This document shows, piece by piece, positions 4,616-60,946 of a stretch of DNA of 64,000 bases. The notes below the pieces were generated by a model. It worked only from the letters and a program-made list of their open reading frames with translations, did not search any database and was not told the DNA's origin. Made by a program: the position numbers and the translations under genes. Each line of letters begins with the position of its first letter. The stretch's first letter is position 1. Origin of the DNA: Vicugna vicugna (Eukaryota); NCBI GenBank assembly GCA_013265495.1, contig MU057560.1:3160909-3224908 (forward strand), written 5' to 3'.

Positions 4616-4747
4616 TTAAGTGCTGTTCATGTATTTTCTTGCGATGCTCTGACTGTCTATAAATACGGGGTCCAGCGAGGCCACCTTTGCTGCTATGAAG
4701 GCGTGGATGCAATGCAGAACAGCCGTCAGGTCCTGAAACTCGAGTTC
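4616..4747 (-). CDS. SNTG2: SNTG2 terminal coding exon 17 equivalent (132 nt incl. TAA): ELEFQDLTAVLHCIHAFIAAKVASLDPVFIDSQSIARKYMNST*
   Basis: Strong acceptor gtgttttttcttacag|GAA; 35/43 identical to the recalled human C-terminus, with the stop at the same position. Confidence 0.95.
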   Translation of the reverse strand, partial: ELEFQDLTAVLHCIHAFIAAKVASLDPVFIDSQSIARKYMNST

Positions 4748-5949
4748 CTGTAAGAAAAAACACAGTGTGTACGTAAAATGTTAGAAAAACACATTACAAA
4801 AAATTCAACAGATGCTCTGCTCTCTGAATTACAAGCAAGTTACTCAAGTACAAACACCCATGAAATAAGGAAGGTTTTAAGGTGAGGTTAAAATATTTTG
4901 TTAAATTCAGCCACCATTAGAATTGCTTTTGGTATTCCCTGAACATTACAAATTATGAATAAAACAAATATATATTTAAAAAAGCAGCCAACACGATCGA
5001 AGGTGGTAACACCAACAGTGCCGGTATCTGTCTCCTTCCGCTGACAACCTGACGGTTGCTCTGAACCCCTTGTTTTCTGTCACCAGGGTCGGCTAATGCT
5101 CCTGCCCTCTGCTGGGCATCCTGGCTCCGCCTGTGCTTGGTGTCCAGTCACCCGACCAGCAGAGTCAGGGCAGGACTCCAGCCTCCCCTGAGGAAGCTGC
5201 AGAGGTCGGTCCCTGAGGTCCATGGAGAGCAGCCGTCTCCATCACATAGAAGTGCAGGGGCAGGGGCAGGGGCTCCAGAGAATGGAGGTGAGGCCATTCA
5301 CGACGGCGGCTCCACTCAACTGCAGGTTGTCAGTGTAGACGGAACGGCTTCTGTTGGAAGAAGATGCCACCTAGGGCTTTCCTGGCTGCAGAGGAGGAGT
5401 CAGCGCCTGGCAGCACAGCGTCACAGGACAAGCGGCTCTCTTGATGGAGGAAATGTTCACACACCGAGGTACAGGCAAGCCCTTCCGGATCACACGTGGA
5501 TTAACTTCAACTCTGTGCTGACGACAGTGGTCTGCCGTGTGCCCTGTTAACACACACGGCACATCTGATACAACCGTGAAAGAAAAGGGTGCGCTGACCA
5601 GAAGCAGCAAAAAGGACCCATTCTCAGGATGAACGCTGACTGTCTCCCTTCCGGGGACGCCGGGGCTGGCGGTCCCACCACGAGATGGTTCCCTTCCCAG
5701 GCGCCAAGGCCACACTGGCTCGAGGGGCATGTGCTGCTCCGCCTTCCGGCCAACCTGGAAGGAACAGCCCCCGTCCTGGCTGGTGTGTGTTCTTGGTCCT
5801 GACGAGGCGGGAAACTGTGCTGAGAACCACACTTCTCCGGAGCAGCTCCTCAGAACCCCCGAGAGGCTGTCTCTCCAGCTACGGCCTCAGTCTGGCTCGA
5901 GTGAAATCTTTTCTGTTCCTTTCATAGATTGTTTATTGATTGTTTCCAT

Positions 5950-6815
5950 CAGCACTCTTGTCGGGGCCAATGCAGCTGGTGACTTTAAGCTGAAGCCAAC
6001 GCTCCGTTGCCATCAGACCACCCTAGGGCCCTTAAGAAGGGTGCTAAGTCCACACTGCCTGAGCTCTAGCAGAGGGAACACAAAACCTGGATGGCAGCAC
6101 CTCTGTTCACAGCAGGTTTACTGAGTATTTTCCGCCCGCTGTTGAGACCCACTGCGCAGAGGATAAAGACTCCTTTCCAAATGCGACTGCGCACTGACAG
6201 TGGACCCGGCCCCCGGGCCCTGACAGAGACAGGCGGTGAGACTCAGGTTGTTCTCAGACCCGTGGATCGAGGAGTCGTTTTGCCTTCAAAGGCTCATTAT
6301 TTAAGAAATACGTTTTGTAAGGCTGTAGCTGCCACAGGGAGGGGTTCCTCTGATGGATCCGGGCAAAGTCAGCGGAAAACCTGGAAAGGATTCACTGTTT
6401 TCAACACCATGAACACTCACGATTCATGGGGAGAGGAGCTTGGAAGAAGTCGACTCTGGTCCACGTGGGTGACTCTGAGGGCATCCACACTTGCAGAGAG
6501 GAGGTGGCTGCCGGTGCGGTGGAAACAGGACACCCAGAACTGGAGTGGAGCCTGAAGACGTGTGAGCTGCTGCCACCTCAGGACAAAACCCGGACAGGTG
6601 AGGAGCTGCTTCTCACAGGTGAGCCAGGAAAGTGGCTTCCTGAGGTGGTGTGCGCTCCTGGAGGAGATGCTGCGAAGACCGTTGAAATGACAATAAGGGT
6701 TGAGGGTGTGACATAAGCCGAGCTGACGAAGCATCGTGGTTTGAGAGGATGGACTCCGCCTCCAGTGACCACCACCTGATTCGTCCGCAGCCAGCAGCAA
6801 CGGGGGCTGCGTCCA
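5950..6815 (+). mobile_element. Tigger1 (pogo/mariner DNA transposon) remnant, degraded transposase DDE region and C-terminus
   Basis: Fragments in three track ORFs: GANAAGDFKLKP, HYLRNTFCKAVAA..SDGSGQS..WKGFT, EELLLTGEPGKWLPEV..PGGDAAKTVEMT, all matching Tigger1 transposase with frameshifts. Confidence 0.9.
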
Positions 6816-7177
6816 GGGGGCTCAGGCCTGGACGTGCGGGGAGACTGGGCACTGCTGCCCTCGCTCCTCAGGGCGAGGCCACGGGGCTTCACAGGCAGCA
6901 ACCCCGGGCCCAGCCCCAGGGCCCGACGCTGCTGACGGAGCTGAGAGCCATTCGTCCTGGGTCCCCCAAACCTGCGCCCAGAGGGTGTGCAGACTGGGGT
7001 CCCAGCGAGTGGCCCCTGGACTCACTGGCCTCTGTGCTGGCCCTGCCGCCAGGGCTGTGACGGGGCGCGTCCCCGCGGTCCCGCCCAGCTCTGCGCCCCC
7101 AGAGCTCGGACGCTCAGGGCTTGCTCCTGCCGCTGCAGAGGCTCCGATCAGCTCCACGCCTGTCGGTGTGACAGGGC

Positions 7178-7837
7178 GCCTCCCTCCGCACCGCCCCTCC
7201 TCCGGGAACCCCTTTCTCAGCACTGTCCGTTCACATCTGGCCACCGGCTGACTCGCGGTGGCTGAGGAGCAGTCTCCAGGGGAGTTTAACCTCCAGATCG
7301 TCAGAGAGGGGAAATGGCCGCCTCGTTCCTCCCAGTGGCAGCGTCTGCGTCACGCACACTTAAGTGGGCCGTCAGAATCGTGCACGTGCAGGTGCGTACA
7401 CCATCAGGGTTTAAGAGGAGAGAAGGGACAGCTCTGTTTCTGTCCCGGTTTCCTGGAGAACAGATGAGAAACCAGGCTCAGAGCCGTCCCTGGGGGGGCT
7501 GCACTGCGAGTCCCTCACTCTCTGTCAGGCCCTTGGTCAGCTCCATCCTCAGGAGGAACGGGGGCCCTCAGGATGCTCCCCTGAAGATCCTGCCCAGGCC
7601 CGGCCTCCCTCCGCACCGCCCCTCCTCTGGGAACCCCTTTCTCAGCACTGTCCGTCCACATCTGGCCACCGGCCGACTCGCGGTGGCTGAGGAGCAGTCT
7701 CCAGGGGAGTTTAACCTCCAGATCGTCAGAGAGGGGAAATGGCCGCCTCGTTCCTCCCAGTGGCAGCGTCTGCGTCACGCACACTTAAGTGGGCCGTCAG
7801 AATCGTGCACGTGCAGGTGCGTACACCATCAGGGTTT
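7178..7837. repeat. 235-bp direct repeat: copies 7178-7412 and 7603-7837, period 425, 190-bp unique spacer
   Basis: Copies identical apart from three substitutions in the first ~75 bp. Confidence 0.95.
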
Positions 7838-7950
7838 TCATTTGCAAGAGACTTACTAAGTCTGAAGATAAAAAGCTAAAATAGCTGCCCTTTGGTGGCT
7901 CAGTCTAGAAGCAGAAATGAAATCACAAAGAAACATGTAAAATACAAGCG

Positions 7951-8823
7951 AAGCTGGGGGTGGAGGGGACACCATCCCTCCCCGCAGCGAACCCCGGCTT
8001 CCGTCCTTGCACTTCACCTGTACTTCACTTAAACCGCACATCGCCAGTTAGCAGAACAGTAGGAAAGTAAGTCCTTCATTTCATAAAGCTTGTCTTAAAG
8101 TACAAAGAAGATAAAAAATGCTGTGAAGCCGAACCTGCAGCCATCGGCATCATTCTGGGGTCAGCCCCCGCTCCTGGAATGACCCAGGCTCTGTGAGCCG
8201 CGGGTGGCGGGAGTCGCTCCCACCCCATGCTCTGGGCTCTCCCCTGGGGCTCGGGAAGCTCAGCGCTTTCGCTCTCATCCCCACGGCGGCGCTGTGGCTG
8301 CTCGCCCCAGGAAGAGCTTCGGTAAAACATGAAAGATTAATTGCTCCGTGGGTATTACTCCTTTAACTAAAAACTCAGTAAAAGCTGGGGGTGGAGGGGA
8401 CACCATCCCTCCCTGCAGCAAACCCCGGCTTCCATCCTTGCACTTCACCTGTACTTCACTTAAACCGCACATCGCCAGTTAGCAGAACAGTAGGAAAGTA
8501 AGTCCTTCATTTCATAAAGCTTGTCTTAAAGTACAAAGAAGAAAAACAAATATTTTCTATAAAAAATGCTGTGAAGCCGAACCTGCAGCCATCGGCATCA
8601 TTCTGGGGTCAGCCCCCGCTCCTGGACTGACCCAGGCTCTGTGAGCCGTGGGTGGCGGGAGTCGCTCCCACCCCATGCTCTGGGCTCTCTCCTGGGGCTC
8701 GGGAAGCTCAGCGCTTTCGCTCTCATCCCCACGGCGGCGCTGTGGCTGCTCGCCCCAGGAAGAGCTTCGGTAAAACATGAAAGATTAATTGCTCCGTGGG
8801 TATTACTCCTTTAACTAAAAACT
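7951..8823. repeat. Near head-to-tail tandem duplication: copies 7951-8375 and 8382-8823
   Basis: About 425-bp unit; copies differ by a few substitutions and a 17-bp insertion (aaaaacaaatattttct) in the second copy. Confidence 0.95.
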
Positions 8824-9439
8824 AAGTCAACGGAACATAGTTTTCCCCGAAACTCCTGGTTACCTGGCGTGAAGTGCCCTCTCCCTCCAGCCCTGGCAAG
8901 GCTCCGGGTCCCACTTCAGAATCCTGTCCCCAGCTCTCTGTCTGAACCGAGCATTCACTCCAGAAATTCTCACAGATTGAGATTCCCTGACTGGCATTTG
9001 CCATCTCGTAAGTTGTCATAAACACAGAACAGCAGCTGAAAGGCAGTTTCTCAAAACCGCCAAGCGTGTTTCCTTGAGGCTGTGCACAGGCACGCGTCCC
9101 ACTCCGTGGGGCTCACTACTAGGACGTGGGAACTACGTTTGTCCTGCTTCACTCCCACCTGCGAGGCCCTGGGAGGGCCCAGGTGCGGTGCCCCGGCCCT
9201 TGCGTCACCTGTGGCTGGCCGAGACCCTGCCCGCGGGCCCGGGGCAGGCGCGGGTGGGGGGCTGCGGCAGCTCTGGGACCGGGGAGGGAGCTGAGGTGGG
9301 CACGTGTTTAGTCTGGGTCTCCTCGGATGTACGTGCGTCTCGCCCTCACTTCTGTGTGGTTGGGTCGTCGCATTTGCAACTCTGTCTCTATTTCGTCAAG
9401 AGACACCTACACACCACTCAGGCTGCAAGCCTGCAAACC

Positions 9440-9545
9440 CTGTACCCCTCCCTGTGGCTCCACAACTTTCCAGGCCTTTCTCTTTTCCTGAAAATGGAAA
9501 CTGATGCCATCTAAACCAAGGGCCACGAAGAAATTGAGTCCGCTT
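9440..9545 (+). mobile_element. MIR SINE remnant (degraded)
   Basis: ...ttttcctgaaaatggaaactgatgcc... resembles the MIR core motif. Confidence 0.4.
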
Positions 9546-10240
9546 CAACACATATGCCCCCAAATCAACGTCATGTGCAGGAGGGGTGCTGTTACCCACG
9601 ATCGGTGCAAAGTACCAAAGACCAGGTTAAGTCACTCAAGACTCCCTCCCTCTCCGCTGGGCGCAGCCCCAGTCCTGCCCCGGCCAGCACTGCTGGCTGT
9701 GGCTGCCCACCGTGCAGCTCGCGCCCCGACAGCCCCGACGGAGGTTACTGTGGGTTTGATTCTATCCGTCCCCCAAACATTAGGATATTAAGCATTTCTG
9801 CACAATTTCAACTGCACTGCCGAAGTAGGTATGAAGCATTATCTCATTAAACTCAGAAGAGATGTTAACAGTGGACACTGGACATTCAGATACAGCCATG
9901 TCACGTGAGGTGTGTCCTCGGGTTAATTTCATCCGAAAAAGCACACAGAGCTGACCATCTGTTCCAGCAGCAGGTGTCTGCGTTCTCTCATTTTTTCTTT
10001 CTTTTTTTTTCTTTTGTGTAACTGAATTTTTCTTCAGTTTCTTTCGTTTATATTAAAACTGGGTTGTAGACAACACCATTATTCATAAAATATGGAGCAA
10101 ATCAGTACCTGCTAACAGTACAATGACAGCCAATTTGTAAGTTATGGCAGATCCTCGGAATTAACACTACAGACAATTCACCACACATGCAGCTTGTAAA
10201 ACTCTGCCTTTAACTATTGACTTCTTTCTGTTTTCTTTCT

Positions 10241-10323
10241 TTTTAAATGGAGGTCCTGGGATGGAACCCAGGGCCTCCTGTGTGCTAAGCACGCCCCTGA
10301 CTGCTGAGCCGTGCCCCCTCCCC
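10241..10323 (-). mobile_element. tRNA-Ala-derived SINE (camelid-type)
   Basis: Reverse strand reads GGGGAGGGGGCACGGCTCAG..GTGCTTAGCACACAGGAGGCCCTGGGTTCCATCCCAGGACCTCCATTTAAAA, with degenerate A and B boxes. Confidence 0.85.
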
Positions 10324-10499
10324 TTTGTGAGCTGTGCCCCCCTCCTCCTTTCTGAGCTGTGCCCCCCCCTTTATGAGCTGAGCCCCCCTCCCCTTTGTGA
10401 GCTGTGCCCCCCTCCCCTTTGTGAGCTGTGCCTCCCTCCCCTTTGTGAGCTGTGCCTCCCTCCCCTTCGTGAGCTGTGCCCCCTTCCCCTTCGTGAGCT
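10306..10499. repeat. 24-bp minisatellite (GAGCTGTGCCCCCCTCCCCTTTGT)n; 8 full units plus a partial unit, running into the gap
   Basis: Units start at 10306, 10329, 10354, 10375, 10399, 10423, 10447, 10471, 10495. Confidence 0.95.
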
Positions 10500-11080
10500 N
10501 NNNNNNNNNNNNNNNNNNNNNNNNNNNNNNNNNNNNNNNNNNNNNNNNNNNNNNNNNNNNNNNNNNNNNNNNNNNNNNNNNNNNNNNNNNNNNNNNNNNN
10601 NNNNNNNNNNNNNNNNNNNNNNNNNNNNNNNNNNNNNNNNNNNNNNNNNNNNNNNNNNNNNNNNNNNNNNNNNNNNNNNNNNNNNNNNNNNNNNNNNNNN
10701 NNNNNNNNNNNNNNNNNNNNNNNNNNNNNNNNNNNNNNNNNNNNNNNNNNNNNNNNNNNNNNNNNNNNNNNNNNNNNNNNNNNNNNNNNNNNNNNNNNNN
10801 NNNNNNNNNNNNNNNNNNNNNNNNNNNNNNNNNNNNNNNNNNNNNNNNNNNNNNNNNNNNNNNNNNNNNNNNNNNNNNNNNNNNNNNNNNNNNNNNNNNN
10901 NNNNNNNNNNNNNNNNNNNNNNNNNNNNNNNNNNNNNNNNNNNNNNNNNNNNNNNNNNNNNNNNNNNNNNNNNNNNNNNNNNNNNNNNNNNNNNNNNNNN
11001 NNNNNNNNNNNNNNNNNNNNNNNNNNNNNNNNNNNNNNNNNNNNNNNNNNNNNNNNNNNNNNNNNNNNNNNNNNNNNNNT
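10500..11080. other. Assembly gap (581 N)
   Basis: Run of N directly after the minisatellite. Confidence 1.
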
Positions 11081-11320
11081 TAATTTTTAAATACTTGTGA
11101 CTTGGAGTGAAGTCAAATAATGCGTGTCAGTGATCACAACTTTAGGATCAAGCGCCTGTAGCAGGAGGCAGCGTGCGTGCACTCGAGGGACACCCTGCTG
11201 ACTCTGAGCGGGGCTCACACTGGGAGACCAGTCCTCTGTCCCCCGGCCGGGGGAAGGGAACGTCCCCCTCGGGCACGGGGCTTCCCTCGGGCGGGCTGGG
11301 CTCGGGGGCACAAGGCCTAC

Positions 11321-11431
11321 CTTCATCTCGATCTGCCTGGTGCCCAGATTCTCAAACAGCAGCTTTACCCAGGTTTTCCCGTCGTCCGAAGATCCCCTCA
11401 GCTGAGAGAACTTAAATCTCCAGAGCACGTC
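11321..11431 (-). CDS. SNTG2: SNTG2 exon 16 equivalent (111 nt, intact): DVLWRFKFSQLRGSSDDGKTWVKLLFENLGTRQIEMK
   Basis: Acceptor ccttcctttacag|GAC, donor AAG|gtaggc; 30/37 identical to recalled human exon (syntrophin-unique region). Confidence 0.95.
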
Positions 11432-14320: not shown

Positions 14321-15007
14321 ACCCTTAGTTTAATATTTTCAAAATCGTCTAGAAACGTAGAAGTACTGGAGACGGTCTTCTTATCCACTTTGTCAGGCGC
14401 AGAAGACGCTTCCTGCTCAGACGCATGTCTTTCCCGTGCATCTCAGACCTTCTCAGCGTACCGCGCCTTTATTAATGTCGGGAAAGGAGGACTGAGGGTG
14501 AACGGATTCACGCCGAGAAACAGCTGCTCACCTGCTCCCTGTCCGGCGCGGGGAGCGGGGACTAAGAAATCCGACCACGCGGATGCTCCGGAGGGGGCGC
14601 CGTGCAGACGCCCAGCGTTGAAGTTTGCTGTGTCGTCGAGTCCAGGGTTTTGTTCTTACAGCGTTCGGCTAATAAGTAGCACTGCCACGCTGGGGGTCCC
14701 GCTTTACCAGGAGATCACACACACGCGGTCCTCTCACAGGGTGATGTCGCAGAGAAGCGCCAGTTATCGTGCAGCGATAAGCTCCCCCTCCCCCCGGCCC
14801 CTGCGACTGGAGGTCGGCCCGCCTGGCGCTGGGGCTCCTGAAATCTGGGACCTGAGCCTTCACAGGGGGGTCAGCCGGGGAGGACAACTCGCTCCCGCAC
14901 GCCGGTCGGGGCTGGTGATGGCCGCAGACGCGCGTGGGCTCTCACGTCCCTGCAGCGCCACAAAGCGCCCGGCCGAGGGGCTCCTTGCTCTACTGCCGGA
15001 TGCTCAT

Positions 15008-15091
15008 CTTTGGGAAGCAGGTGAATCCCAGCGCGAAGTCCAGCGTGAAGCACAGGGCGTCTCCCCGCCAGCTGCACAGGTACGTTTTGGA
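15008..15091 (-). pseudogene. SNTG2: SNTG2 exon 15 equivalent (84 nt, 9 nt short) with AT donor: SKTYLCSWRGDALCFTLDFALGFTCFPK
   Basis: Acceptor catacttttttag|TCC; matches recalled human SRTYMCSWQGEMLCFTVDFALGFTCF; followed by AAG|atgagc (gtgagc-like). Read-through meets an in-frame TAG at 14992-14990. The 3' boundary is inferred. Confidence 0.85.
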
Positions 15092-29406: not shown

Positions 29407-29439
29407 CTGTGAGGACAGAGGGCAGACACATAAACCCCG

Positions 29440-39890: not shown

Positions 39891-40557
39891 AGAAAGGTCA
39901 CGACACTGAGGGGGCTGCATACAGATTGTTAGGTTTCCCGAAGCCGTCAGGTTTTGTCTGTGGTTCTGACGTTCAGACTCACAGAAAGTTCACTGACGAA
40001 CTTATAGGCCAGGCATCCACATTATATGCAGCCGATTTTGGGAAAATGGTGCAGGTGGGAATTGGAAAGTAAATTGCAAACTGTAGTGCGCAGCATTAAA
40101 TTTCTATTAGGGCCCAACAAGATTGGACTGTTCGGCTCTTCTGATAAAACTTGGAAGAGCTGAGGGGAAACAGCTTTTTAAGTTCCGTTCTTTGCCCATT
40201 AAATCAGAATGAGGAGAGGGCGCCCTTCTGTCTTGTTTGCTGTCCGGACTCTTCAGCCGTATAACTGGTGCTCTAAGACAGCCAAGCTCCGGCACCCCCA
40301 CCTCAAGCCAGCTGGCCCTGTAAGCACGAGGACATCCCAGTGTCCTGATGGTTGTTCGAGCTGAAGGACGAGCACGGTGGGTTAGTTTAGGACTTTAAGA
40401 AAAGCCAGCGGGCCCCGCAGACCCCTTCCTGCCTTGGGGTTGGAGGAGGGCACCACGGCCGTGCCTGCTCTGGCCTCGGCCGAACAGCGGAGCTGGTCTT
40501 CGCTGCTCTTACAGGAGGGCCGGTCAGCACCTCCCAGGCCCTCCAGGGCATGCTTTC

Positions 40558-43209: not shown

Positions 43210-43328
43210 TCCGCGTCACACCCCACGCTCTCTGAGGGCGAGGCTGTGTGCCCCGCCATCTGCCCCGCATCCGCATCACACCCCACGCTCTTCGAGGGCG
43301 AGGCTGCACGCCCCGCCATCTGCCCCGC
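43210..43328. repeat. 60-bp tandem repeat, 2 copies
   Basis: Lines 43201 and 43261 align column for column (tccgc..tcacaccccacgctc..gagggcgaggctg..ccccgccatctgccccgc). Confidence 0.9.
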
Positions 43329-46300: not shown

Positions 46301-47583
46301 TCTGTTCTCCCTCCCGTCAGCTTTGGGAGATAAATCCAGAGAAGACACACGACGTGTGAACCACGGGGAGGTGTGTCCCCAGTGGAAAGTCCAAAAGAAG
46401 CATCTGTCTTAGGAACACGAGGTGTAGCAAGGAAAGTGTGTTTGTGTGTGAGCATGAAGACGAGTCCTCTGTTGTCTGAGGACGTTTGAGGGACGTTACT
46501 CATCAAACAGCCCACCTCCCTCGCTGCCCCATGTACACAGACACAGCTGTTCACAAGTTCAGAGAAACATTATAAAAGGAATAAAAGGTAGAGGAAGTTT
46601 TCCTAGTGTTTCTTTTCTAATTTAAAAACGTCGACTAGAAGGGTTTACTTTAAAACATGGCTCTAATTTCCTGTAAACGTTTGATTGGCAGACACTTTCC
46701 TGAATGTCTTCCACTTTGAATCAAATTTTATCACTAAGCACTATTTGGAGTATTTATACACACTATTTAAAGCAAACTGAACGATTCTTTGGTTTTTTTA
46801 ACTTGAGGCTGCAATGGTGCTTCCTCAAACCTATGGAATTAGAATCAGAAAGCTAATGGGCTATGAAGTTTTAAAGGTTCACGCCTGCAGCTTTGGTTTT
46901 GACTTTATCAGAAAGGAAACAGGGAGTAACACAGGGACTTCAAAGCTCGCTCCCCTGACACACAGCCGAGGACTTGTACCCCTAGTCAGCACGCACCCCT
47001 CGAGCCAGGAAGTCGGGCGTGTTCAGGGCCGGCCTCTGCTCTCAGAAGGAAGAACTGAGGGTTCCTCACGGGGCAGGGAACCTGGGTCGAGGTAGGGGCC
47101 CCCCAAAGTGAACACACCATTTGCGTCAGGGGGCGCTCTTCCCCAGGAACAGGATCTGCGGCGTCAAAGGCCTCCCCAGAGCGAAACTTCCCAAACGAGG
47201 GCACCATCTGAGAAAACGACAGGAATCCAGAAGCTACCTGCTGTAACTGACTACGCTTCAATGAAAAACATTCCGAATTACACAGGCGTGTCTCCGCCAT
47301 CTATCCTCTCTAAGCTTAAAGGATCACACCCAGTTACCTTGTGACCACGGCCCCCTACAGAACGCGGCTGCCCACAGCACCGAGATCCGGCTCTCAGGGC
47401 AGAGCGGCTCCCGGCGCCACTCCCAGCACAAGGGACAGTTTTACGCGGCGGCACTGAGGGCGCGGCCCCGACTTGGGTCTGACGTGTGCTGGGGCTTTCA
47501 CATCCACGTGTCCGAATCCAGCTTCAGAAACAGGAAGAGGCTACTGTTGGAGACTTGCACGATCCACACAAACGCAGTCCTAC

Positions 47584-47622
47584 CTGGTCACCAGGAGAAC
47601 AGCACGCATTCACCATTCTCAC
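47584..47622 (-). CDS. SNTG2: SNTG2 exon 11 equivalent (39 nt, intact): VRMVNACCSPGDQ
   Basis: Acceptor cccctctctctgcag|GTG, donor CAG|gtagga; 8/13 identical to recalled human MKMANKCCSPSDQ; expected size and position. Confidence 0.88.
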
Positions 47623-49148
47623 CTGCAGAGAGAGGGGAGCAAGGAGTCATTGTGACACGTGTATTAAAGCCGTAATTTCCCACCCTGTCGAGTTGACAGC
47701 TGAAGTTAATCAGCTGCATGAAGTGCCCTTGGAAACAAGTGTCTTTTAGGAAGCTTTTCCCCCCAAAACAAGAGCAGAAACAAATGCATGGTAGCAGCTC
47801 GCATCACAGAAAACCCAAGACGAGCACTCGGTCTGCTCTGTTTCTGGCATCAGCATTTTGTGAAGTGAGGCAGTGGGGCAGCTGCTGCTCAGAGCTCAGC
47901 CCCTGAGGGTCCGGGGACGTGGTCGCTGCCCTAGGTGATCAAGGTTGTTACAGTTCCCACATCTCACACCGCTCCTTCCTGGGTCCCCCAGCCATCCTGC
48001 ACGGTGGACCTCACTCCCCCGGATTTACAGCACGGCCACGACTACGCAGCTGGAAAGTGGCTCTGAGCCCGCAGTTCTGGCTCTAGAGCGCTCATGTCTC
48101 CTCCCCCGCTCTGCCTACGAGCTGCTCTGTGTGCGAACCATCGGCCTGAAGGGCTCTCGTGGTCACGCGCATTCTCAAGTGTCCGCCCACCACCACCTGG
48201 GTGTTCCTTTCCTCCCATCCACCAGGATACCTTTGGAAGTCAAAATGTCAGGTAGGAGAACTGAGGTCCTAGAGAGGAGCAGGTACCCCCAGTGCAACAG
48301 AGAGCCCCACGGTCTGTGGAATAGAAACCTCACAGGGTCTGAAAGTGCTCCAGCAGCCCCCGGAAGGTGGCGGCATGTGAGAAGAGGGGGTGGCGGGCTG
48401 CTGCCGGGGCCGTGACTGGCTGGCCAGAGGGCGTCCAAGGACACCAGGCCCCTCCTCCACAGCGGCCCGGGGATGGAGCCGGCTCTGGGATGCCAGCGTG
48501 GCCAGCGGGGCACGGCACTGGCCGGGAATGAGAACCAGCAAACCGTGCCCGGCCACCTCCGGCCGAGCACTGGTCCTCCCACGAGCCCCGCACTGCGGAC
48601 GCCAGGAATCGCCTCGGGGACCTTAATGCTGCACGGATGCTCGCCTCCCGCCACACCTCAACCTGCCAGCTATTTTATGTTTTAACTTCGTGCTGACTTT
48701 GATCGCAAGATGGTTCTCTCAAGGAGACAGAGCACACTTCCTTCCTGGGTACCTGCAGTGAACCAGGACTATTCTTGGTAGCTGGGCGTCTTTGAAAGTT
48801 TCCTCAGTGTTTTGGGAAATGACATCTTGAACCCGATTAGGTTCCCCAAATAAAAACGCCACATCACACCGACGCGCTTGGGTAAAACGCACATAAAGGC
48901 ATCTGCGCCCAAGCGTTTCTGTGCAGGCGGGAGGGGAGCGACCAGCGCGAAGAATCCAGACACTTGGTTCTGCCGCTGCTCTTACATCAGTCATTACAGC
49001 TTTGCAATGACTCAGTTGTTTAACTTTTTTTAGTCAGAGATTCGACATGTTCTTCTGTTTAATGTTCTTACCAGTGTGTTAGGCCCAACTGCAAGTAACA
49101 AAAAAGTCTTAATTGCTTTTGTGGACACGGCGGGAGGTCCGCACTCAC

Positions 49149-49276
49149 GTCCTGCAGCGTCCGGTGGCTGATGTTTGCTGACACGGCCCTGAGCCAGTCA
49201 GCGCCGTCCTGGGCTGTGTGAAACTGCAGGAGCCCGTGCTGCCCTGTCTGGGGCCAGCACCTTGAATGCGCCGGAC
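49149..49276 (-). pseudogene. SNTG2: SNTG2 exon 10 equivalent (128 nt) with 2-nt deletion frameshift
   Basis: Acceptor ctcttcccgcag|G, donor GAC|gtgagt. The 5' part reads SGAFKVLAPD in one frame and the 3' part reads GLLQFHTAQDGADWLRAVSANISHRTLQD in another. Confidence 0.9.
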
Positions 49277-49845
49277 CTGCGGGAAGAGCGGAGACGCTGG
49301 AGGGGGCCCCTCGGATCCAGAGGGGGCGACCGGAGGGGGCGGAGGTGACCCCGTCCGCAGTCACCAGGGCAAACCCAGCGCTCAGCCAGCCCGTGTCAGG
49401 ACCTCGGGTAGGTCTGCTGAAAGCGAGCTCAAGGCCCTGACATCCGCCACCAAGAGCCAGTCCTATTTACTAAACACGTGGAAGGCAATTCGGACAGGAA
49501 GTGCGCCCTGCTCTCGCGGGAATGGTGGCGTGCCTGTCTGACGGGGTCCTGAGCCCAGCTTTTTGAAGACCGTTCATCGTGGTGTTTGAAGCTCCTGACA
49601 CAGGGAGACGGCGCAGGTCAAGCAGCACCGCCACTCAGCGTGAGGCGCGCCTGTGACCACGCACGCACTTCTGATTTACAAAAGGGCTTTCGAAGAAGTT
49701 GGTTCTCCTTTATTTTCACCATAAAAACCTCCTTCCCCAAACCTACCGTGACAGTTCTCGTAACAGCAACATAACTGTAACTAACTCAGTAGTTCTTTCC
49801 TACCCTGCACAGCCTTTCTTTCCAAGGGGATGTACACACATCTAC

Positions 49846-50195
49846 TGTCACAGGCTGACGTGTGTCCCCCCAGGATCTGTATGTGGAAGCCCAGACCCCA
49901 GGGCGGCGTCTCTGCAGACGGGCCTCCAAGGAGAGAAGCCTGAGCGAGATCGGACGGGGGGCCCTGACCCGACAGGACTGCTGTCCCTGTGAGATGCGGC
50001 CCCGAGCTGGTCTCCACCCGAGGACGAGCTGCAGAGCCGGCCACTGGGCAGTCAGGAGGAGAGTCCTCACCAGGCACTGAACCCCCCGGAGCTTTGATCC
50101 TGCACATCCCGCCTCCAGAACTCTGAGAACATACGTTTCTGTTGTTTAAGCCCCAGCCTATGGTACTTTGTTACTGCAGCCTGAACTAACGTAAT
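49846..50195 (+). mobile_element. MLT1 (MaLR) solo LTR
   Basis: tgtcacaggctga..gtgtcccccc.. start and cctccagaactctgaga..tttctgttgtttaagcc..tggtactttgttactgcagcc end. Confidence 0.85.
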
Positions 50196-51317
50196 TATTA
50201 CAATAAAGGAGTGTCATTCATACCGCTGTTCCTTTTTTAAAGAAACCATGTATCTAATCCATGCAGTTTGCATTCATGTCCTTAAGGAGACAATTGAAAG
50301 GTTAAAAAAATAACAAAACAAAACAAACCTTTTTTTTTAAAAAAAAACAAGGTTTGCACTAAATTACACTTTAATAATCTTTCAGACATGGGTTTAATCA
50401 TGGTTTCATTAAACAGACAGAAGGATGTGACGGAAGGGAAGGAACCGGAGACGACATAAAACAGCCCTGCACATTCAGGGCCGAAGCCGCCAGAGCAGGG
50501 TCCCTGACCGCACAGCCCTGTCTTTCCGTGAGCACACATCCCGGCCAGGTGTCAGTCCCGCCTTGGGGAGGCTGCCTGGGTCAGAACACAGGGGCCTTTA
50601 CAGCCACGTGCGTCCCCGTCTCCACGTCCTGCTCCAGAGCCCTGGCTCAGAGATCCCACCTGGGGGTCGGGGGGCCGGGGAAACAGGGCATAAAGTCTAC
50701 AGCTCCTGCCCTCCTTCCAAAGGAACTCACTCCGTTTCCAACAGAACTTGGAGCAGTCCAAGGTCGTGGGCCCAGAACAACGGATGTTTTGGTAAAAGAC
50801 CACCGAAGGAGCGTCCCGGGGTGGACACAGGCTGAGCTGTCGGCCGGCTCGCTCTCAGGAGAAACCCCGGGAGCGATGCAGCCAGAAGGGGCCCCCTGGG
50901 CTCGGCTCAGAGCTCGGACGCTGGCCCAGGAGCCGGGGCTGGTCTGGCCTTCTCACCGCAGGGTTTCAGTGACGTCTCTGCAGGTTGGACAGCAATGCCT
51001 CTTATTTCCAGTCTAGTTCTGTTCACATTTAGAACTGAAAACAGCATTTCTCCTTCTAGTGACTGACCCTTCGCGGAGGCCCGACGGACACCTTTCCACA
51101 GTCAGAACCACTCCCGGCGGCAAACCAGCTCTCCTCTGACCACGGACTTCTCCCGGTGCTTACCTCGTGTTGCCGTCATCACTGACTGTTGCTGCTTTTG
51201 CACACGCGGAACCCGCCTGGACGGAGGGCCTGCACTTTGGGGAGGCCAAGGGGGCGTCACCGGCTGGTGAGGCTGCAGGGTTTCTCAGCGACTCCATGTC
51301 GGACGAGGGACACACAC

Positions 51318-51438
51318 CTCAGCCCTTCTGCCCCCGCTCTGCACCGCGAGATCCGGACGGGGGCAGCGACAGGGCGTCCAGCCAGCGCTTCTCGTACTTT
51401 GGTTCATCACCTGCGAGCGAGGGAGGTGAGGACGGGGC
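51318..51438 (-). pseudogene. SNTG2: SNTG2 exon 9 equivalent (121 nt) with 7-nt deletion frameshift and premature TGA at 51321-51319
   Basis: Acceptor tcttgcacag|GCC, donor GAG|gtgtgt. The first 28 codons read APSSPPSLAGDEPKYEKRWLDALSLPPS. The homologous tail RISRCRAGAEGL(R) lies in a different frame. Confidence 0.9.
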
Positions 51439-52574
51439 CTGTGCAAGACGGACGGGAAGCGACAGGCACAGAGTCGGTGGAGAGCAGGCCGGGCCCCCAG
51501 CCCCCAGACACACATTAAACACGTTTCAGCTGCTGCAAGAGCAGGTGCGGCCGTGTGCCCAGAGATCCGGGAAGAAATACGTCCTCTTCTACCTGAATTT
51601 AAATGATGTTCTTCCTCTAGTTTTAAAAACAAAATGCTGCCCCAAAGAGAGGAGAGTCACGAGGGAGGGGAGGGAGAGAGACTACAGCTGGAAGGAATTT
51701 CAGGGACGTGACGAAGGCTCTGGGTCCAGGGAAGCCGTGAGCCACCTCCCCGACCTGGAAGGTCAAACTGGAGAGAGCTCGAAGCCAGGACACAGCACAC
51801 AGTGATACACAGAAACACTGACAACGTGCTGATGTCGCCCAGGCCACACAACCGGGCTTATGCACGAACGGCAAAGACCTCAATGTCCACCCGATGGACG
51901 TGAGCAGCAGGGAAGCCGCTGGGGATGGGGAGCCAGGTCCCTCCCCAGCAGGGCCTGCAGGTGCGAGGAAGGTGTGTGGAAATGTGAATGAAGCCACGCA
52001 AACAGCCCCATTTCCAGACAAACAACCCGCAGGTGCCCAGTCAGCAAACTGCCGGGTCCTGGGCCTGAGGGAGGACACAGCCCTGGGCCCAGGTGGCTGC
52101 ACCTCGCCGGACGCCAGATACTGAGTCTGCTTCACAGGGAAGCGTCCTCACAGCAGCCGGGCCAGGAGTGAGAAAGGCAGGTTTTCCCGGAACCTTCCAT
52201 CCAGGAACAGAGCAGAACAGGGTACGAATCCCCAACATACAGCAAACACACTAATGAAGACGGCGAAACCGATCGGCCCCGAGGGCTCCACCAGAGAGGC
52301 TCACGCCCGGGGAGGCCGCACAGACTTCGGTCCCTGTGTGCCGACCCCCAGTGCCCAGAACGCGGGAAACGGTCTCACGGATGAAAACAGGGGCCTGCGG
52401 GGCGGCGGTGCTGGCAGCGTGCTCCTCTCAGAAGAGTAAGGCCGTTCAGGATGCGTGGGTGTGAGAATACCCCAGAGCTCCCACCTCGGGAATCCAGCAG
52501 GGCCCGAGAACTGCCCTGACAGCCAGGATGCCCTCCTCAGACCAGACTTCCCACGAGTCTGTGTTGGACAGTCT

Positions 52575-52870
52575 CTGGCTGGACAGCGCCCCTACCCCAG
52601 GATGAACATATTGGGTCCCAATCCCTGGAACCTGGCACCTCATTTAGACAAAGGGTCCTGGCCACGTGATTAAATTAAGGACATGGAGCTTGGCATTGAC
52701 CCCGGATTACCTGGGTGCCCCCGAAAAGCTACTGCAGCCATCCTCACAAGAGGGAAACAGACGGAGACCACAGAGCGGGAGAGCAGGGCCCCGTGAGGAC
52801 AGAGGCTGAGTCAGGAGCAGTGTGGACACACCACAGGGGGCCTCCTGCCGCCTGATTTCAAGCCCTGGAG
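52575..52870 (+). mobile_element. MLT1C/D-like MaLR LTR fragment
   Basis: tccctggaacctg..gtgattaaattaaggacatggag..ggattacctgggtgcccc..atcctcacaagaggga. Confidence 0.7.
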
Positions 52871-54774
52871 GCTGGATTTGGGTCCCCCCCAACATTCTTT
52901 ATTTAAGTGTATTTATTAATTCCATGGCCCGTAGCTCGGAAGCAAAGGCATTGCAACAGACGTCTAAGCGAGATTTTACGACTGCTCCTCCGTTGCCATC
53001 TTTCTGCAGCTGCGTTCTAACGCCTGCTGTGGGATTTGCTGGTGCACACATGAGCACGGAAGACTCAGAGCCAGCACTCAGGGTGGACTTCCTACTGGCC
53101 TTCCTGAGCGACCGTCTGTCTACACCACGGCTGCCCCAGGTAAGGACTCATCATTCACGACACGCCGCGGCCCGTCTCCAGCCACCAGCTTCATCACCGT
53201 CAGCTGCAGTCACCACACCACGTCCACGGTGCGAGGGTTCTTCACACACAGTTTCCCTGAGGTTTGCGGAGCGCGGTGGGCTGCGCGCTGACTCACACCT
53301 GTGACCACAGCGTGCGTCCTCACCAGAGTTATTGGAATCCTGCTGCAGCACCACCACTGAGGTCATAATGATTCCAGGACACAATAAACATTATTTAAAT
53401 GAGCAAAATAATACGGATTGTTTTATAAAATCATTTAAGTTTACTCTTCAAAACATACCAGAAGAAGCAATTTCCTACTACGAAAAACAACTTTTCTTCT
53501 ATAAAATCAGGCTGCACTTCGTAAGCCCTGGGCGCATTTTAGCATCAGACTGTGAGGTTTTAAAGGAAGCTTCCGGTTCCCTCTCCCTGGGAGCTCTTCT
53601 GCCCCAGGGGCCCCTGCCCAGCCCAGAGTTTCAGGTCAGACCTGATGCAACTTTCCTCTAGAATATTTTGTAGAACCCAGAGGCTGAAGGGGGCCGCCAG
53701 GTCTCCGCAGGGCAGACGAGTCCTCTTGACGGCAGGTCCAGGGCCACGGGGGAGGAGGGCAGAGCCTGGCTGGGGTCACCTCCCAGCTCGCTCCACCCCT
53801 GCATCCCTGCGGGACCCACGCTGCCCGCCCTCTGCCTCTGCAAGGCCCGAGGTCTGGGGGAAGCATCTCGGGAAGGAGCCCGAGCTTCCCCTCCCGACGG
53901 GACACCAGCAAAGCGGGCCGGGACAGGCCTTCCAGAACCGGCAGTCACGGCTCCGTAAGCTCAAGTCCTGGCGGCTTCACCTCTGGGGGCGGGTCCCAGG
54001 CTGAGGGACGGTCACCTCCTGCAGAAAGCAGAGATCACGATTCTAATTTCAGCCCCAAATGGCACATCCGCTGAACAGCCTGCGGAGGTGACGAGGTGTG
54101 TTCCTCCCAGCGGGGTTGGACCTGTCAGCTCCCCTGAAGGACCCGCCACGGAGCAGAGCTCGGGGAACTCGGGGTGACACCCCCCATCGACTCCAGAGGA
54201 GGGGCACCAGAACACGTTTCCCTGTATGTGACTCACGATGCAGCCGAAAGGTGCCAAGGAAATAGAGGAGACAGGCCGTCCTGGTTCTGAAACACTCACA
54301 CGTGCCCGACCACCTCACGGAGCCTTGACTCCGAGGGGCCTTGGTTCTGGGATGAAAGTTCTGAGTCGGAGCCCGTAGTAGTGTCAGTCTTTGCTGGAAG
54401 AGGATACACCGATTTTCCGGGTTCCCCCGCCGGCCAGGAAGCTTGTCTGGGACCTTCTGCCTGCAGGGCTGGGCACCACAGTGCAGGAGGAAGAGGGGAT
54501 CCCGCCGGCGGGAGTGCTAGCCCAGGACGCTGCAGGACAGCCACGCCCCACGCTGCCCCGAATTCTCCGAGATGAAGGTGAGCTGCAAACCGCCGAGCGC
54601 GCCTCCTGCTCAAATGCTCCAACTGTGCCCTCCGCCCGCACCTTCTGTGCTGGTGGAGAAGTCAGCCTCTTCTAGGAAAATCTTCAGTGCTTTGATACTT
54701 GACGTTCAAATGAGAAATCTGAAGCCGACTTCTGCGGTCTTACAGTCTTCGTGAGTGGTTGGGGGTGCCCCACT

Positions 54775-54960
54775 TTCTTCTTATATTTTTTAACTGAACT
54801 ATATTGAGGCATAAATTACAGAGTGATGAGGACTGACTAGCGCAGTTTGGTGAGGCCTGACATTCGTGTACACCTCCTGCGACCGAGCCCTGAATTACAA
54901 GAAAGGTTGACTCCACCCAGACACACAGCGTTCCCCACGAGGGACGCTCCCTGAGCCGGT
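54775..54960 (-). mobile_element. Old L1M 3' end, reverse orientation
   Basis: tatattgaggcataaattaca..cagtttggtgaggcctgacattcgtgtacacc. Confidence 0.55.
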
Positions 54961-57900
54961 GGGCAGGCACCTCCCCGGCAGCTCAGGTGGTCCCCGAGCT
55001 GACCTCCATCACACGTGACGCCTGCGTCCTCCTCACTTTAACGACGAGCTGGTCACCCTGACTCGTGTGGGCCCAGTGCTCACTTCGGGGACAGAGGTTG
55101 TGACTGCACTGTGACGTCCACGTGGCAGTTTTCCCTTCTTGCTGTCGTGACTCCCACGTGGTAACTTTTACTCCCTTTGGGGGTTTGGTCTCTGGCGTGG
55201 GTGACAGTCCAGGCCTCGCCCGTCCCTCCTCACTTGCTAAGCCCCCAGCCGGGTCCCTACTTCCCTGCCGCATCCCCACCGCATGTCCCCACGGAGGGTC
55301 TGAGAGACGGATCCGCTTCCAGAGGCCCCCATGCCACCCGTCCAACCCCTCGCTCGGCCCGAGAACCAGGCCCCCAGGATGGAGGGGACTCTCTGGGCTT
55401 TGTCCCAGGTGCAGCCTGTGGTCTCAGGCTCTGAACACAAAACAAACAAATATTTATTTAATATGACAGCACCTTAAGACATTAAAGCAAAGTATGTTTA
55501 GTCCCTTTTCACATGAAAATAAACGAGGGTTAAGACAGGCTCAGAGGAGCAACCCAGGGTTCCTACAGGATTTGACTTTTCGCCCAGAATGCTTATAATT
55601 TTCTCAGTTAAATAAATCACTGCTCAGTATTTTTATAGGAGTTTTAAAATACATGCATTCCTGCAAACCACAGCTTTCACGGTGCTGAACCTGCACGTCC
55701 GTCTCTGGGGGCAGCCTGGTCTCGCGTTGGCGCTGGCCGTCTCTGAAGGGACACAAGTGTGTTCTGTGCAGACACCACCCCCCAGCCAGCCCCGGCCCTG
55801 GTCTGAGCCGAGGGGCCACGTACAAGCGCATCTGAGCAAAGGAGTTCAAGAAGATGTGCCGCTTTGCGCAAATGAGGTTTACATGTTCTACGAAGCGTCC
55901 TGTCAGCTTTTAACCAAGTGTGTTTCTCACTAAAATAATTTTTGCCTGTTTTCCCTCCAAAGAGCAGCTCTTAAAGGCTCGATTAGCCATCAAATGCTAA
56001 CCATGACTGAGGGAGAAGCTTCATTCCACCCTCTTTCTGCAGCTAAACGAGGACATGCGTCTCAGGAGCAAAGCAGCAGAGCTGGGCCCCGTGGTTTTAG
56101 CCACAAAAATGTGTCAGTGATTTTTCTATTTGAACTTAATATATTTTTAGTGGAAAAGTTTAGTTTGTTATTTTAATGAAGTTAATTCATTAATTTTCTG
56201 AAGACAGCTAAGTACCTAAATGACTGAAGTTGTATAAATTTTTTATTATTACAGCAGTTAAGTAATTTAAAAGCAAATGAACCGATCTGACAACATACCA
56301 TTGTTATATTCTTCAAATTGAAATCATTGTTACGGTGATAAGATTGAAATCTTATAACATGAATGACGGGAAAAACAGGGCTTGATCTTAAACTCTGGGT
56401 GGTCGTGAATCAGGCCTGTTTGGAAGCCAGGTGAAGTCTTCACAGCCATCAGGCTCGATTTAAGCTGCAGGTGAACGAAACACTGAAGCACAGGGCGAGA
56501 AGAAGAGGGTGCAAATACTATCTTTAGAGAAACATGGTATTATTGAACAGGACGGGGGGCTCCCGAGGCGGAGCGGCGCTCTGGCGAGACTGGACCCGCA
56601 GAGTGCGGCACCGACGCCAGCAGAGGTGGGTCACTTTCTGTGTCAGGACTGTTGGGAACAGACCCGGTTCCCGAGAAAAAGACGGCACAAAAATTGTCGG
56701 AGAGAAAAACTGCTTCGCATTACGAGAGAAAAACAAGCATTTTGTGACGACAGTAATGGAGAAAAACAGGCGCATTTCAGACACAGACACTGAGCGGCTC
56801 CGCCAGGAGTGAGCGGGGTCCAGGACCAGGTCACCAGGCTCGGATTCCGACGCAGGTGCGCACTGGCTGTGCCCTGGTGTGCGAGCAGGCACGGCCGTGT
56901 CCCCCTGCTCAGCAAACTAAATTCCGGTGCCTCGGAGTTCACCCTCCTCCAGACAAAGAAGGTGACCGTGACGGATGTATGACATTGGAGGGGTTCCTGT
57001 AAAATGACTGCTGTGGAAAATGCGGCTCTTGTAACGAATTCTATCACGAAATGCAGCTACACACGTGAGGAGAAAGGTGCAGTCGTCCATGCCCTTTCCT
57101 TCCACGGATCGTCATTCCAGCACCTGGCGTGTAGGATTTACTTTTCCATGCCTTTGTAAATGATCGTGTTTCTCGGCACAGACGCTTTTGAAAATTAGTA
57201 TCATGCCAGTACGTTCCAGTCATTAAACAACCTTACTAAAACCCATTTTAAAACACTGGAAAGTCTCATCCCGTGAATCGCTCACCGTGGAACTCATTAC
57301 TTCCCCGCTCCTGAGAAGCTGGGTGGACTCACTCCTCCTCAAGCACATGTTGAATGTCCTGTCGTTCATTCCTGATGTGGCATTGCTACGTCGAAGGTGA
57401 AAGGACCCAGAACAGTCTCAGCGCCAGCGGCCGGACGCCCTCCCGACACACGGCCGCCCCGCGCTGGACGGCCCGGCCGCCCCTCCAGGAGGACGGCATC
57501 GGGGACCACCGCCCAGCGCCCTCCGCGGAGCCTCCCGGTCAGGGTCTCTCGTCACCTCTGCGCTGCCGTGTCCCCGAGCCGTAGGCCCCGCTGACCGGCT
57601 GGGGCTCGGATGCCTCCCGGGAGACCAGCCTCTGTCTCCCCAGCCCCGGTGGTCTGTAACAGGCTTACCGTTTCTACGTAGCTATGTGACGTTTTTCTAA
57701 ATTCCTTAGCAGTAAGGTAGCTATGCACTGTCTTCTGCCAAGTAAGCCTTCTTCAGTCCAAGGTGATTCTAAGTGATTTATTTAAATTTCTGGCAGCTTT
57801 TTCCCTTCTAGCTGCTGTATGAAAGTTTGAAACACACAGTCAGCGTGACACACACACTCCTGTGCACACGTATCTACGCTTGCTTGTGAAGCAGAAACTA

Positions 57901-58539
57901 CCTGCAGCCCGTGATCTCCCAGGGGACTCACGACTCAGAACACTCCTGATGCCCCCGGCTCCATGGGCCCCGCCTCCCCCACAGCAGCACCCTGAATTCT
58001 CAGCAGATGCAGGTTCCATGCAACACGGATGATAAAATGCAGGGGCCTCTTTAAGCAGCAGAACACAGAGTGAGTGTGCAGCCAGACGCTGCGACCGGCT
58101 GCCAAACCCACCCCAGCAGGCCCGCCCTTGGCTGGAACACAAAACGCCCACCCCATGTGGCCCCAAGTGCGGTGCTGGGGAACCACCGACGCTGCAGAAA
58201 CGGGCGGCCAGTGAGGACGTGTCGCTGCCCCGGCCCCGCAGAGCCGAGTCCTTGCCCGTCTTCTCCTCCTGACCAACACTTCAAGCCATTTCCAGGCTTC
58301 TGCCTCAGAGAACATTCTTGCGCGCATCCCCCAGGGCACAGGCAAGTGGCGCTCTGGTCTGCCCCGGAGGGCACTTCCAGCGGGTTACCCGGCGCGCCAG
58401 GCTGTTTCCAAGGGGTCACACCTGCAGGGGGCCGTCGGTCAGTCCCCCTGCGGGCGGCCTTCCTGCCAGGCTCCGCCACAGGGGACGGACGTCGTCGTGA
58501 TGTGTGCGTTTCTTCTGCAGTCGTGAGCCTGAGAATCTC

Positions 58540-59330
58540 TTCGTATGGTCGTTACTCGTCTCCTTTTATGGAAATGCCTAACGGTACTTTGGTACATACT
58601 TCTATTGCGCTGCCTTCTATTTCAAATGGCAACTGTTCTTCTATTCTGAACAATAATTAATAATAATAAGTAGTTAAAACAAGTGTTGAGCTGCCTTTTC
58701 ACATTATTACAGTGTTTAACGAACAGAAGTCTTTAATGTCGTCAAATTCAGCTTTTTTAAAAGACGGACATTTCCAGTCCTCATTCTGAGGCCACAAAAG
58801 TATTCTGATTTACTTTCTAGGTGTTTACAGATTTGGCCTCATACACGAGCCTTTGGTCCACCTGAGACTGGTGTGCAGTTCAGGCGTCCATCTGGGTAAC
58901 ACGTTCATAGTTTTGAACAATCCACCTTCTCCCCCGCCGATCTCCAAAGCGCCCTCTGCGACACTCAGTTTTCTGCATACACTAAGGCCCGTTTACAGTC
59001 CCTCCGCTGCGTCCATCTTTCCTTGACGCTCTCACAGCCTTACTTGCCACATCTCCACCGTGAACACTGCTCTGGGGGACAAACCCCCAACTTCCTCAAT
59101 ACTACCCTGACTCGCCTGGCTCCCTGGTCCTTCAGAAATGTGGTGAATTTTCTTGTTCACGTCCACAAAGTGTCCTGGTGTAACGCGCACTGACGCTGCT
59201 TGGGACACACACACGTTTGGGAACCAGATCCTAAAGCCACAGACGCTACCAGGAAGAAATGGACACACCTGGCTATACTGAAAGTAACCTCTATTTATCA
59301 GGAGTTGGTGTAAATACAGTGGAAACACCA
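58540..59330 (-). mobile_element. Old L1M ORF2 fragment, reverse orientation
   Basis: gagctgccttttcacattattacagtgtttaacgaacagaagtctttaatg and ttgaacaatccaccttctcc motifs; boundaries approximate. Confidence 0.55.
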
Positions 59331-59639
59331 GCTGTGAACTGTGAGCAGAGAGCTGAGACCAAGAACCCATGAGGCATTAGCTCCCAGCGTACATGGGGAA
59401 CCCCAGTGCGTCAGGCAGGAGAAGACAGACAGGTAGGGGTGACGCCCCCCCCCAGGGAGGGGAAGGCAAAGCGAGCATCAGCAGGACCGGCCAACACGCC
59501 TCCTCAGTGACAGCCCGGGGGAAGCCGCTTCACACCCGCCTGCTCAGAAACCCGAGCCCACAGCACAGCCTGGAGAAGCCGGGTCACCTGGAGCCCCCTC
59601 CCCCTGCCTCTGGGAAGGCAGCCGGGACGCCGCTGTGAA

Positions 59640-60095
59640 GAGATGCTGTCATTACTTTGGAAACCAGGCCCTGGCATCCCAGGTCGGGGTCTGCAGTCGA
59701 GAGGTATTTATGAGCATGTTCACGGCAGCTCTGGGCTCAGCGACAGCAGGCTAGGAAAAAAGCAAGGAACACAGGCCAAATGCCTGGTGACGAGCGAGGA
59801 TCGGCAAATGACCCGCAGCACAGTCACACGATCACACACCACGGCCGGAGAAAACACGCGCACGCAGCCAGGCGCGCGCACGACAGCGGCCATGGGGCTG
59901 TGGGTGACGGCGGGTGCAGGCGCGAGTCCCCGACGGCCAGGCCAGAACGGCATTTCCCACGGCTCAAACAACACGGAACGGGGTACTCTTAGGGACCTAT
60001 ACATATGGATGAAGCACTGTTTTATCAAGGGGGTGACGACCTCAAGATCCAGGATGCAGTTTATTTCGGGCAGGCCGGAACACGGGGCGCGGGAG
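59640..60095 (+). mobile_element. L1ME/MC-like 3' end, GC-shifted
   Basis: gcatgttcacggcagctctg..ccaaatgcctggtgac..actcttagggacctatacatat. Confidence 0.5.
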
Positions 60096-60845
60096 TGACA
60101 CAAAAGCCGTGACAATGTTCCAGCTACCTGTTGTGTTGTGAGTCCGTGGTTGTCCGTTTTATTATTTGCTTCATAACTCACACAGGCCTGATGTCAAGAA
60201 CTACTGCAAAGGGTCAAACTGAAAGAGAGCGGCCTTTGTGCCAACACGAGGCTCCCTCTCTGGCTCTGCCTGCAGGTGAGGTAGCTGGCCGTCTGCCAGT
60301 CGAGTGGGTACAATTTCCCACAAAACATCTGTCCTGCTGCTTACGGGATTCCAATCCGTATCCGCCAACCGCCCAGTGGACGATGAGGTCCCACCCAGCA
60401 GGGTCTGGGTCAGGCCAGGTCTCCCTGGGGGGGCACCAGCCTGGGCTCCTCTGTGGCCCCCCATCCCCACCCCCGTTTTTGCTCAGCTCCGTTTTTCTCG
60501 GGAAGGTGAAGATTTGGAGCCCGATGGGAACTCACTGCAAGCACGCAGCCTCACACTTCCTAGGTAGTTTCTGTTAATTCTGGAATAAACTGCTTTCTCG
60601 AGAGTCTGGTGGAAGCCTGCTGAACAGAACCCCTGCAGTCAGGCTTCCCAGGAGAAGCAGAACCGGGACCCAGAGCAAGGACCCCTACCTGCTCACGAGA
60701 CACTATGACGCACGAGCTTAAGGTGCCCTGCGAGGGCGGCCCAGGCGGCCCCGGTGGGAATCATGCCCACGGAGGCGCATCCTGGACCCTGTCTCTGGAA
60801 GAGGGGGGACTCGGTTAAGCCAAAGGTCAGGAGGGGCGCACTTAC

Positions 60846-60946
60846 TGTGGGGCCAGAGTTTCCGTTCAGATGCAAACCGCTGTCAAAGAGGGGTGAGGAG
60901 GTCCCACTGCCACCGGCGTCAGGGTCGCTGGGTGGTCCCGTGGGCC
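60846..60946 (-). CDS. SNTG2: SNTG2 exon 8 equivalent (101 nt, intact): (G)PTGPPSDPDAGGSGTSSPLFDSGLHLNGNSGPT
   Basis: Acceptor tattctgcttgcag|GG, donor ACA|gtaagt; matches recalled human SSPLFDSGLHLNGNS; three codons longer than the human exon. Confidence 0.93.

Follow-up and report, generated by a model that had tools for sequence, protein, structure and literature searches.

The gamma-2-syntrophin locus of the vicuña window

The window analysed here, a stretch of 64,000 nucleotides (nt) from Vicugna vicugna (assembly GCA_013265495.1, contig MU057560.1, positions 3,160,909 to 3,224,908 of the forward strand), carries much of SNTG2, the gene for gamma-2-syntrophin, in a form that has probably lost its function. 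Exons were placed by tblastn with the gamma-2-syntrophins of Orcinus, Bos and Equus, and splice sites were then read on the letters. Ten collinear exons, all on the minus strand, were recovered with E-values down to 5e-28 and correspond to Orcinus residues 167–539, in agreement with an earlier note, made from the DNA letters alone, that had recognised ten exons of this gene. An AG is present at 10/10 acceptors and a GT at 7/9 donors, the exceptions being exon 12 (GAAAGC) and exon 15 (ATGAGC). Boundary reading also bears out the observation in that note that the remaining six exons (8, 11, 13, 14, 16, and 17) keep their frame and canonical AG/GT sites, and exons 11–17 are all of phase 0-0. The exons are as follows, in positions of the window:

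60946–60846, minus strand: exon 8, 101 nt, intact, AG/GT, with a 3-codon insertion relative to orthologs
51438–51318, minus strand: exon 9, 121 nt, with a 7-nt deletion between 51354 and 51353 and a TGA at 51321–51319; the intact form has 128 nt
49276–49149, minus strand: exon 10, 128 nt instead of 130, with a net 2-nt loss within 49245–49230
47622–47584, minus strand: exon 11, 39 nt, intact, AG/GT
40674–40558, minus strand: exon 12, 117 nt, frame open, donor GA at 40557–40556
29406–29335, minus strand: exon 13, 72 nt, intact, AG/GT
24834–24628, minus strand: exon 14, 207 nt, frame intact, AG/GT, strongly diverged (55–69% identity to orthologs; GC content at third codon positions (GC3) 0.88)
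15091–15008, minus strand: exon 15, 84 nt instead of 93 through a 9-nt in-frame loss, donor AT at 15007–15006, TAG at 14992–14990
11431–11321, minus strand: exon 16, 111 nt, intact, AG/GT, weak match to the Pfam domain Syntrophin_4th
4747–4616, minus strand: exon 17, 132 nt (129 nt plus TAA at 4618–4616), intact, stop at the orthologous position

A phmmer search with the 39-residue translation of exon 12 returned gamma-2-syntrophins, and a full-length protein search returned named SNTG2 orthologues of many vertebrates. The conceptual translation of the window, with X at the breaks, was used for the conservation count and the tree described below and is 74% identical to its best match (Balaenoptera). 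The ten exons, their order, their phases, and the stop position match the SNTG2 genes of cetartiodactyls (Orcinus orca P0093, Bos indicus P0144, Hippopotamus P0138), and the residues ISRCRAGA and WLPDD, common to that lineage, are present in the window copy. Unlike these genes, the window copy has a broken frame in exons 9 and 10, two lost donors, and in-frame indels in exons 8 and 15. A maximum-likelihood tree, built from SNTG2 sequences only, places the window as the sister lineage of Bos, hippo, and whales, with a support of 97 in the Shimodaira–Hasegawa-like approximate likelihood ratio test. This placement suits a camelid (Tylopoda), as the earlier note had supposed, though the tree by itself leaves room for a suine; six organism labels lying within about 0.5% of one another are compatible with either tribe of camelids. 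The paralogue SNTG1 (gamma-1-syntrophin) has the same domain plan as SNTG2; it is set apart from the window locus by names and tree position, and the named matches among the best 120 are all gamma-2-syntrophins. By itself, exon 16 reaches 22.8 bits for Pfam PF23012, the C-terminal PH domain of syntrophins, whose cut-off is 27 bits; the pieces are very short, and the Orcinus protein scores 48.3 bits. As judged by the exon map and the tree, the locus is the 3′ two-thirds (exons 8–17) of a gamma-2-syntrophin orthologue and corresponds to the second half of the first PH domain (PH1), the second PH domain (PH2), and the C-terminal syntrophin domain.

Two SNTG2 isoforms of Ursus arctos, X3 and X2 (P0007 / P0145), leave the conserved sequence after exon 14 ('...EVQRTG', then unrelated residues). 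These ends could reflect alternative 3′ exons or a faulty model.

Frameshifts in exons 9 and 10

The match of exon 9 to its orthologs changes frame at about 51355/51352, with one frame leading to '...LSLPPS' and another continuing from 'RISRCRAGAEGL'. Without the 7 missing nucleotides, the first in-frame stop is the TGA at 51321–51319. Independent DNA was represented by Logan contigs from four DNA runs of four organisms, which were compared with the window over 46900–52400. In run X3 (organism B), one 29-kb contig spans this whole interval with 24 substitutions (0.44%), none of them in exons 10 or 11, and with two indels only: one intronic base and 7 extra nt behind 51353. Run X19 (organism D) likewise has 7 extra nt at the exon 9 site; of two short contigs from run X12 (organism C), the first includes these nucleotides and the second matches the window exactly. 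With the 7 nt restored, exon 9 is in frame at 128 nt and reads '...PPSVA(R/Q)ISRCRAGAEGL'. The agreement between contigs and window shows that the assembly is accurate at the exon 9 locus, and the 7-nt deletion is a true allele that is segregating rather than fixed.

The exon 9 haplotypes of the window and of run X3 differ at 5 of 121 nt, compared with 0.44% over the surrounding 5.5 kb. All five differences are CpG to TpG/CpA transitions, of which four leave the residue unchanged when read in the ancestral frame.

Exon 10 is likewise split between frames, with 'SGAFKVLAPD' (49275–49246) in one and 'GLLQFHTAQDGADWLRAVSANISHRTLQD' (49235–49149; 'GLLQFHTAQDG...TLQD') in another. It measures 128 nt in the window and 130 nt in all orthologs aligned; possible routes to this difference are one 2-nt loss, two 1-nt losses, or a gain of one nucleotide with a loss of three. 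The exon is identical in the window and in the organism B contig (run X3). On haplotypes with an intact exon 9, its frameshift leads to a TGA at 49200–49198.

Rescue of exon 10 through a cryptic acceptor was considered and rejected, the AG dinucleotides at 49249–48, 49245–44, and 49240–39 all giving the wrong frame. Mutual compensation of the exon 9 (−7) and exon 10 (−2) lesions, which sum to −9, does not restore the product either: a TGA lies between the two lesions, and the −7 change is not fixed.

In run X19 the contigs are interrupted exactly at 49242–49279, in the 5′ part of exon 10, and the frameshift is not fully read in that individual; low depth or a heterozygous bubble could account for the break.

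Lost splice donors in exons 12 and 15

The frame of exon 12 is open up to its donor, GAAAGC. At this boundary a contig from a distant relative (L001, 78% identical) has CCTCCG|GTAAGCA, compared with CCTCCT|GAAAGCA in the window, and because this outgroup carries GTAAGC, the lesion is read from the alignment as a T>A change at donor position +2. The change is known so far from the window only. An in-frame cryptic GT lies 27 nt after the exon, at 40530–40529, in a weak donor context (GAG|GTGCTG). An exact look-up of the exon 12 read-through open reading frame in protein records gave no match, a homology search with the same frame gave one distant match only, and metagenome scans for exon 12 patterns gave no match.

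Exon 15 has lost three codons, 'CFDSKTK' becoming 'CFPK', and ends in the donor ATGAGC, which is a G>A change at the first donor base; read-through ends at the TAG at 14992–14990. The donor allele was searched for with a 61-nt stretch (14977–15037) in which every 31-mer holds the mutated base, and two such words were sampled. Both words (2/2) with the donor allele occur in at least 20 DNA runs, from organisms A, D, E, and F and from six studies.

Neither of two possible ways around the exon 15 lesion was retained. Use of the next GT (GTAGAG after CGGCA) would give a 98-nt exon that is out of frame, and an AT-AC intron is unlikely, with an acceptor CAG and a donor ATGAGC that departs from the U12 donor consensus.

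The lesions, and the presence of exon 9, 10, and 15 lesions in independent DNA, are direct observations. The earlier note had counted four inactivating lesions and judged it unlikely, given their different kinds, that all were sequencing errors. All four were found on the minus strand where it had placed them, although the exon 9 lesion is not fixed, organisms B and D being intact there and X12 carrying both forms. The count accordingly changes to one segregating lesion (exon 9), two shared lesions (exon 10, also present in organism B; exon 15, found under four organism labels), and one seen in the window only (exon 12). Independent contigs and the runs with the exon 15 donor allele uphold the argument against sequencing error for exons 9, 10, and 15, while for exon 12 the evidence is the window itself together with the outgroup comparison.

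Divergence of the window copy

At a conservation level of at least 97% across 92 vertebrate SNTG2 proteins, 127 positions qualify, and the window is changed at 11 of them, with a median of 0 for the other proteins; the few proteins with comparable numbers of changes at conserved sites resemble faulty gene models. This excess of replacements at conserved sites is observed directly. The terminal branch of the window has a length of 0.30, compared with 0.09–0.16 for sister lineages from the same node, and is thus 2–3 times longer. With a branch of this length, the recent loss proposed in the earlier note is not borne out by the relatives read here, all from one species group. A total of 63 residues are absent from all 14 reference mammals, with 34 changes towards G/A/R/P and 7 away; GC3 is 0.76. 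The composition of these private residues points to GC-biased substitution in a high-GC region, which could contribute to both the excess change and the long branch.

Probable fate of the gene

Taken together, we consider it likely that SNTG2 is a non-processed pseudogene here, that its lesions are partly shared, that its transcript is lost to nonsense-mediated mRNA decay (NMD), and that no full-length protein is made. Closely related organisms have in common the exon 10 frameshift (2 nt net) and the G>A substitution in the donor of exon 15, and these two would be the older lesions; lesions common to organisms about 0.5% apart must predate that radiation. The T>A change of the exon 12 donor would be a further lesion. 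In exon 9, the allele with the 7-nt deletion would be younger, and its continued segregation is to be expected in sequence that already drifts neutrally. On either haplotype a normally spliced transcript would meet a TGA, in exon 9 or in exon 10, and be exposed to NMD. These premature stops lie seven or eight junctions before the last exon, well within the position rule of more than about 55 nt, and NMD is therefore expected by the standard rule. The statement of the earlier note that the stop lies many junctions upstream of the last exon holds to this extent, with the decay itself still a prediction. From the letters, a full-length protein appears impossible from either haplotype seen. It is in this sense that we infer a loss of function, decay of the transcript, and the sequence in which the lesions arose.

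Several points weigh against this interpretation. The view covers exons 8–17 of one window, and another intact copy in the genome, or an N-terminal product of some use, is possible. The restriction of the exon 12 donor change to the window counts here as well. Lesions in exons 10 and 15 are present in all runs readable there, but Logan contigs show the presence of an allele and not its fixation. Pinnipeds and caviomorphs are also long-branched (about 0.2) and have annotated genes, so rate alone is weak evidence. None of the 367 codons in conserved frame has a nonsense substitution, and six exons are wholly intact; much of the divergence may hence predate gene loss. Finally, omission of exons 9 and 10 together with 12 and 15 leaves the frame open to the normal TAA.

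Alternative explanations

A broader scenario, possible but less likely than not, has two forms. In one, SNTG2 was lost in the common ancestor of all camelids after prolonged GC-biased substitution had worn away conserved residues in a high-recombination, subtelomere-like region, and all these animals would be natural knockouts; in the other, the PDZ-bearing N-terminal part survives in a shortened protein through exon skipping.

The specific proposal that a shortened protein is still made, by exon skipping or as a truncated form that keeps the N-terminal PH1a-PDZ module and drops the PH and C-terminal domains, draws on the structure of the gene. Skipping exons 9 and 10 is frame-neutral, as is each further skip of 12 and 15, and with or without these the frame reads to the normal TAA. 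The 0-0 phase of exons 11–17, the absence of stops from the six unbroken exons, and the in-frame cryptic donor 27 nt after exon 12 are all compatible with such a product. It would, however, have only half of PH1, an incomplete PH2, and a Syntrophin_4th domain (Orcinus 430–520) that lacks its start; the exons that remain have also undergone changes at conserved residues, and the cryptic donor is weak. We regard this proposal as unlikely.

Somewhat similar doubt attaches to the idea that the lesions mark null haplotypes at high frequency instead of a fixed loss, with functional alleles persisting in populations. The exon 9 deletion is indeed polymorphic, being heterozygous in X12; the contigs are evidence of presence only, and those of X19 break within exon 10. 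The exon 10 frameshift, on the other hand, is common to the window and organism B, whose exon 9 haplotypes differ, and each of the 20 runs in which the exon 15 donor site is present, under four labels, has the mutant allele. Persistence of functional alleles is on this evidence improbable.

It is very unlikely that the locus is a decayed segmental duplicate of a functional SNTG2 elsewhere in the genome. One 64-kb window leaves room for such a copy, but at a likeness of at least 90% no second set of contigs falls on exons 9–11 in the four runs, the tree position is that expected of the orthologue of the species, and exon order and introns are those of the gene.

That the gene is intact and its apparent lesions stem from faulty sequencing or assembly of a GC-rich region, as a GC content of 57%, an unresolved gap, and an exon 12 donor change seen in the window only might suggest, is refuted for three of the four lesions by an independent contig in 99.6% agreement over 5.5 kb with the same exon 10, by the recurrence of the 7-nt deletion in X12, and by the 20 or more runs that carry the exon 15 donor allele, and as an account of the locus it is highly implausible.

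Relation to known gene losses

Gamma-2-syntrophin is described as a scaffold within the dystrophin glycoprotein complex with neuroligins 3 and 4X among its partners, and SNTG2 as a candidate gene in autism-linked copy-number variants at 2p25.3 (PMC3276563). A literature search for an SNTG2 pseudogene, camel SNTG2, or SNTG2 gene loss found no report of a loss, and gene-loss catalogues may already list it. If non-processed pseudogene status is correct, a healthy large mammal without SNTG2 would be a natural knockout for a synaptic scaffold that binds neuroligins and is a candidate in autism, and would argue that some lineages can do without the gene or have SNTG1 as a backup.

The locus resembles mammalian lineage-specific (unitary) pseudogenes in its retained introns, in several lesions of different kinds of which some are shared and one is polymorphic, and in accelerated protein change. 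Unitary status, which the earlier note thought probable, would also call for single-copy status, conserved synteny, and fixation; the window locus is known from one 64-kb stretch, in which no flanking gene was identified. The loss is most likely an ordinary example of lineage-specific gene loss. It also illustrates that a defect present in the reference may still be segregating and need not be a fixed loss, and that seemingly compensating frameshifts (−7 and −2) can occur by chance in a dead gene.

Assembly gap, repeats, and composition

The window has a GC content of 57% and two runs of N, at 10500–11079 and 63847–63979. The first lies inside intron 16, separated by 241 nt from the GT donor that follows exon 16; it adjoins one further feature:

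10305–10499: minisatellite with a 24-nt unit, 8.3 copies, 88% matches, in intron 16 next to the N run 10500–11079

The gap is probably the unresolved remainder of this minisatellite array. Exons 16 and 17 are each complete and of phase 0, and they follow each other without residue loss (Orcinus 459–496, then 495–539); the reading frame is therefore independent of the gap, and no coding exon is hidden in it.

Intron 16 also holds a tandem duplication of about 440 nt (7951–8382 against 8382–8830) whose copies are 97–98% identical, and in intron 11 a 60-nt unit occurs twice at 43210–43328 with 89% matches. The second N run, of 133 nt, lies in intron 7. A short interspersed repeat at 50114–50153 draws extra contigs with unrelated flanks in all four runs.

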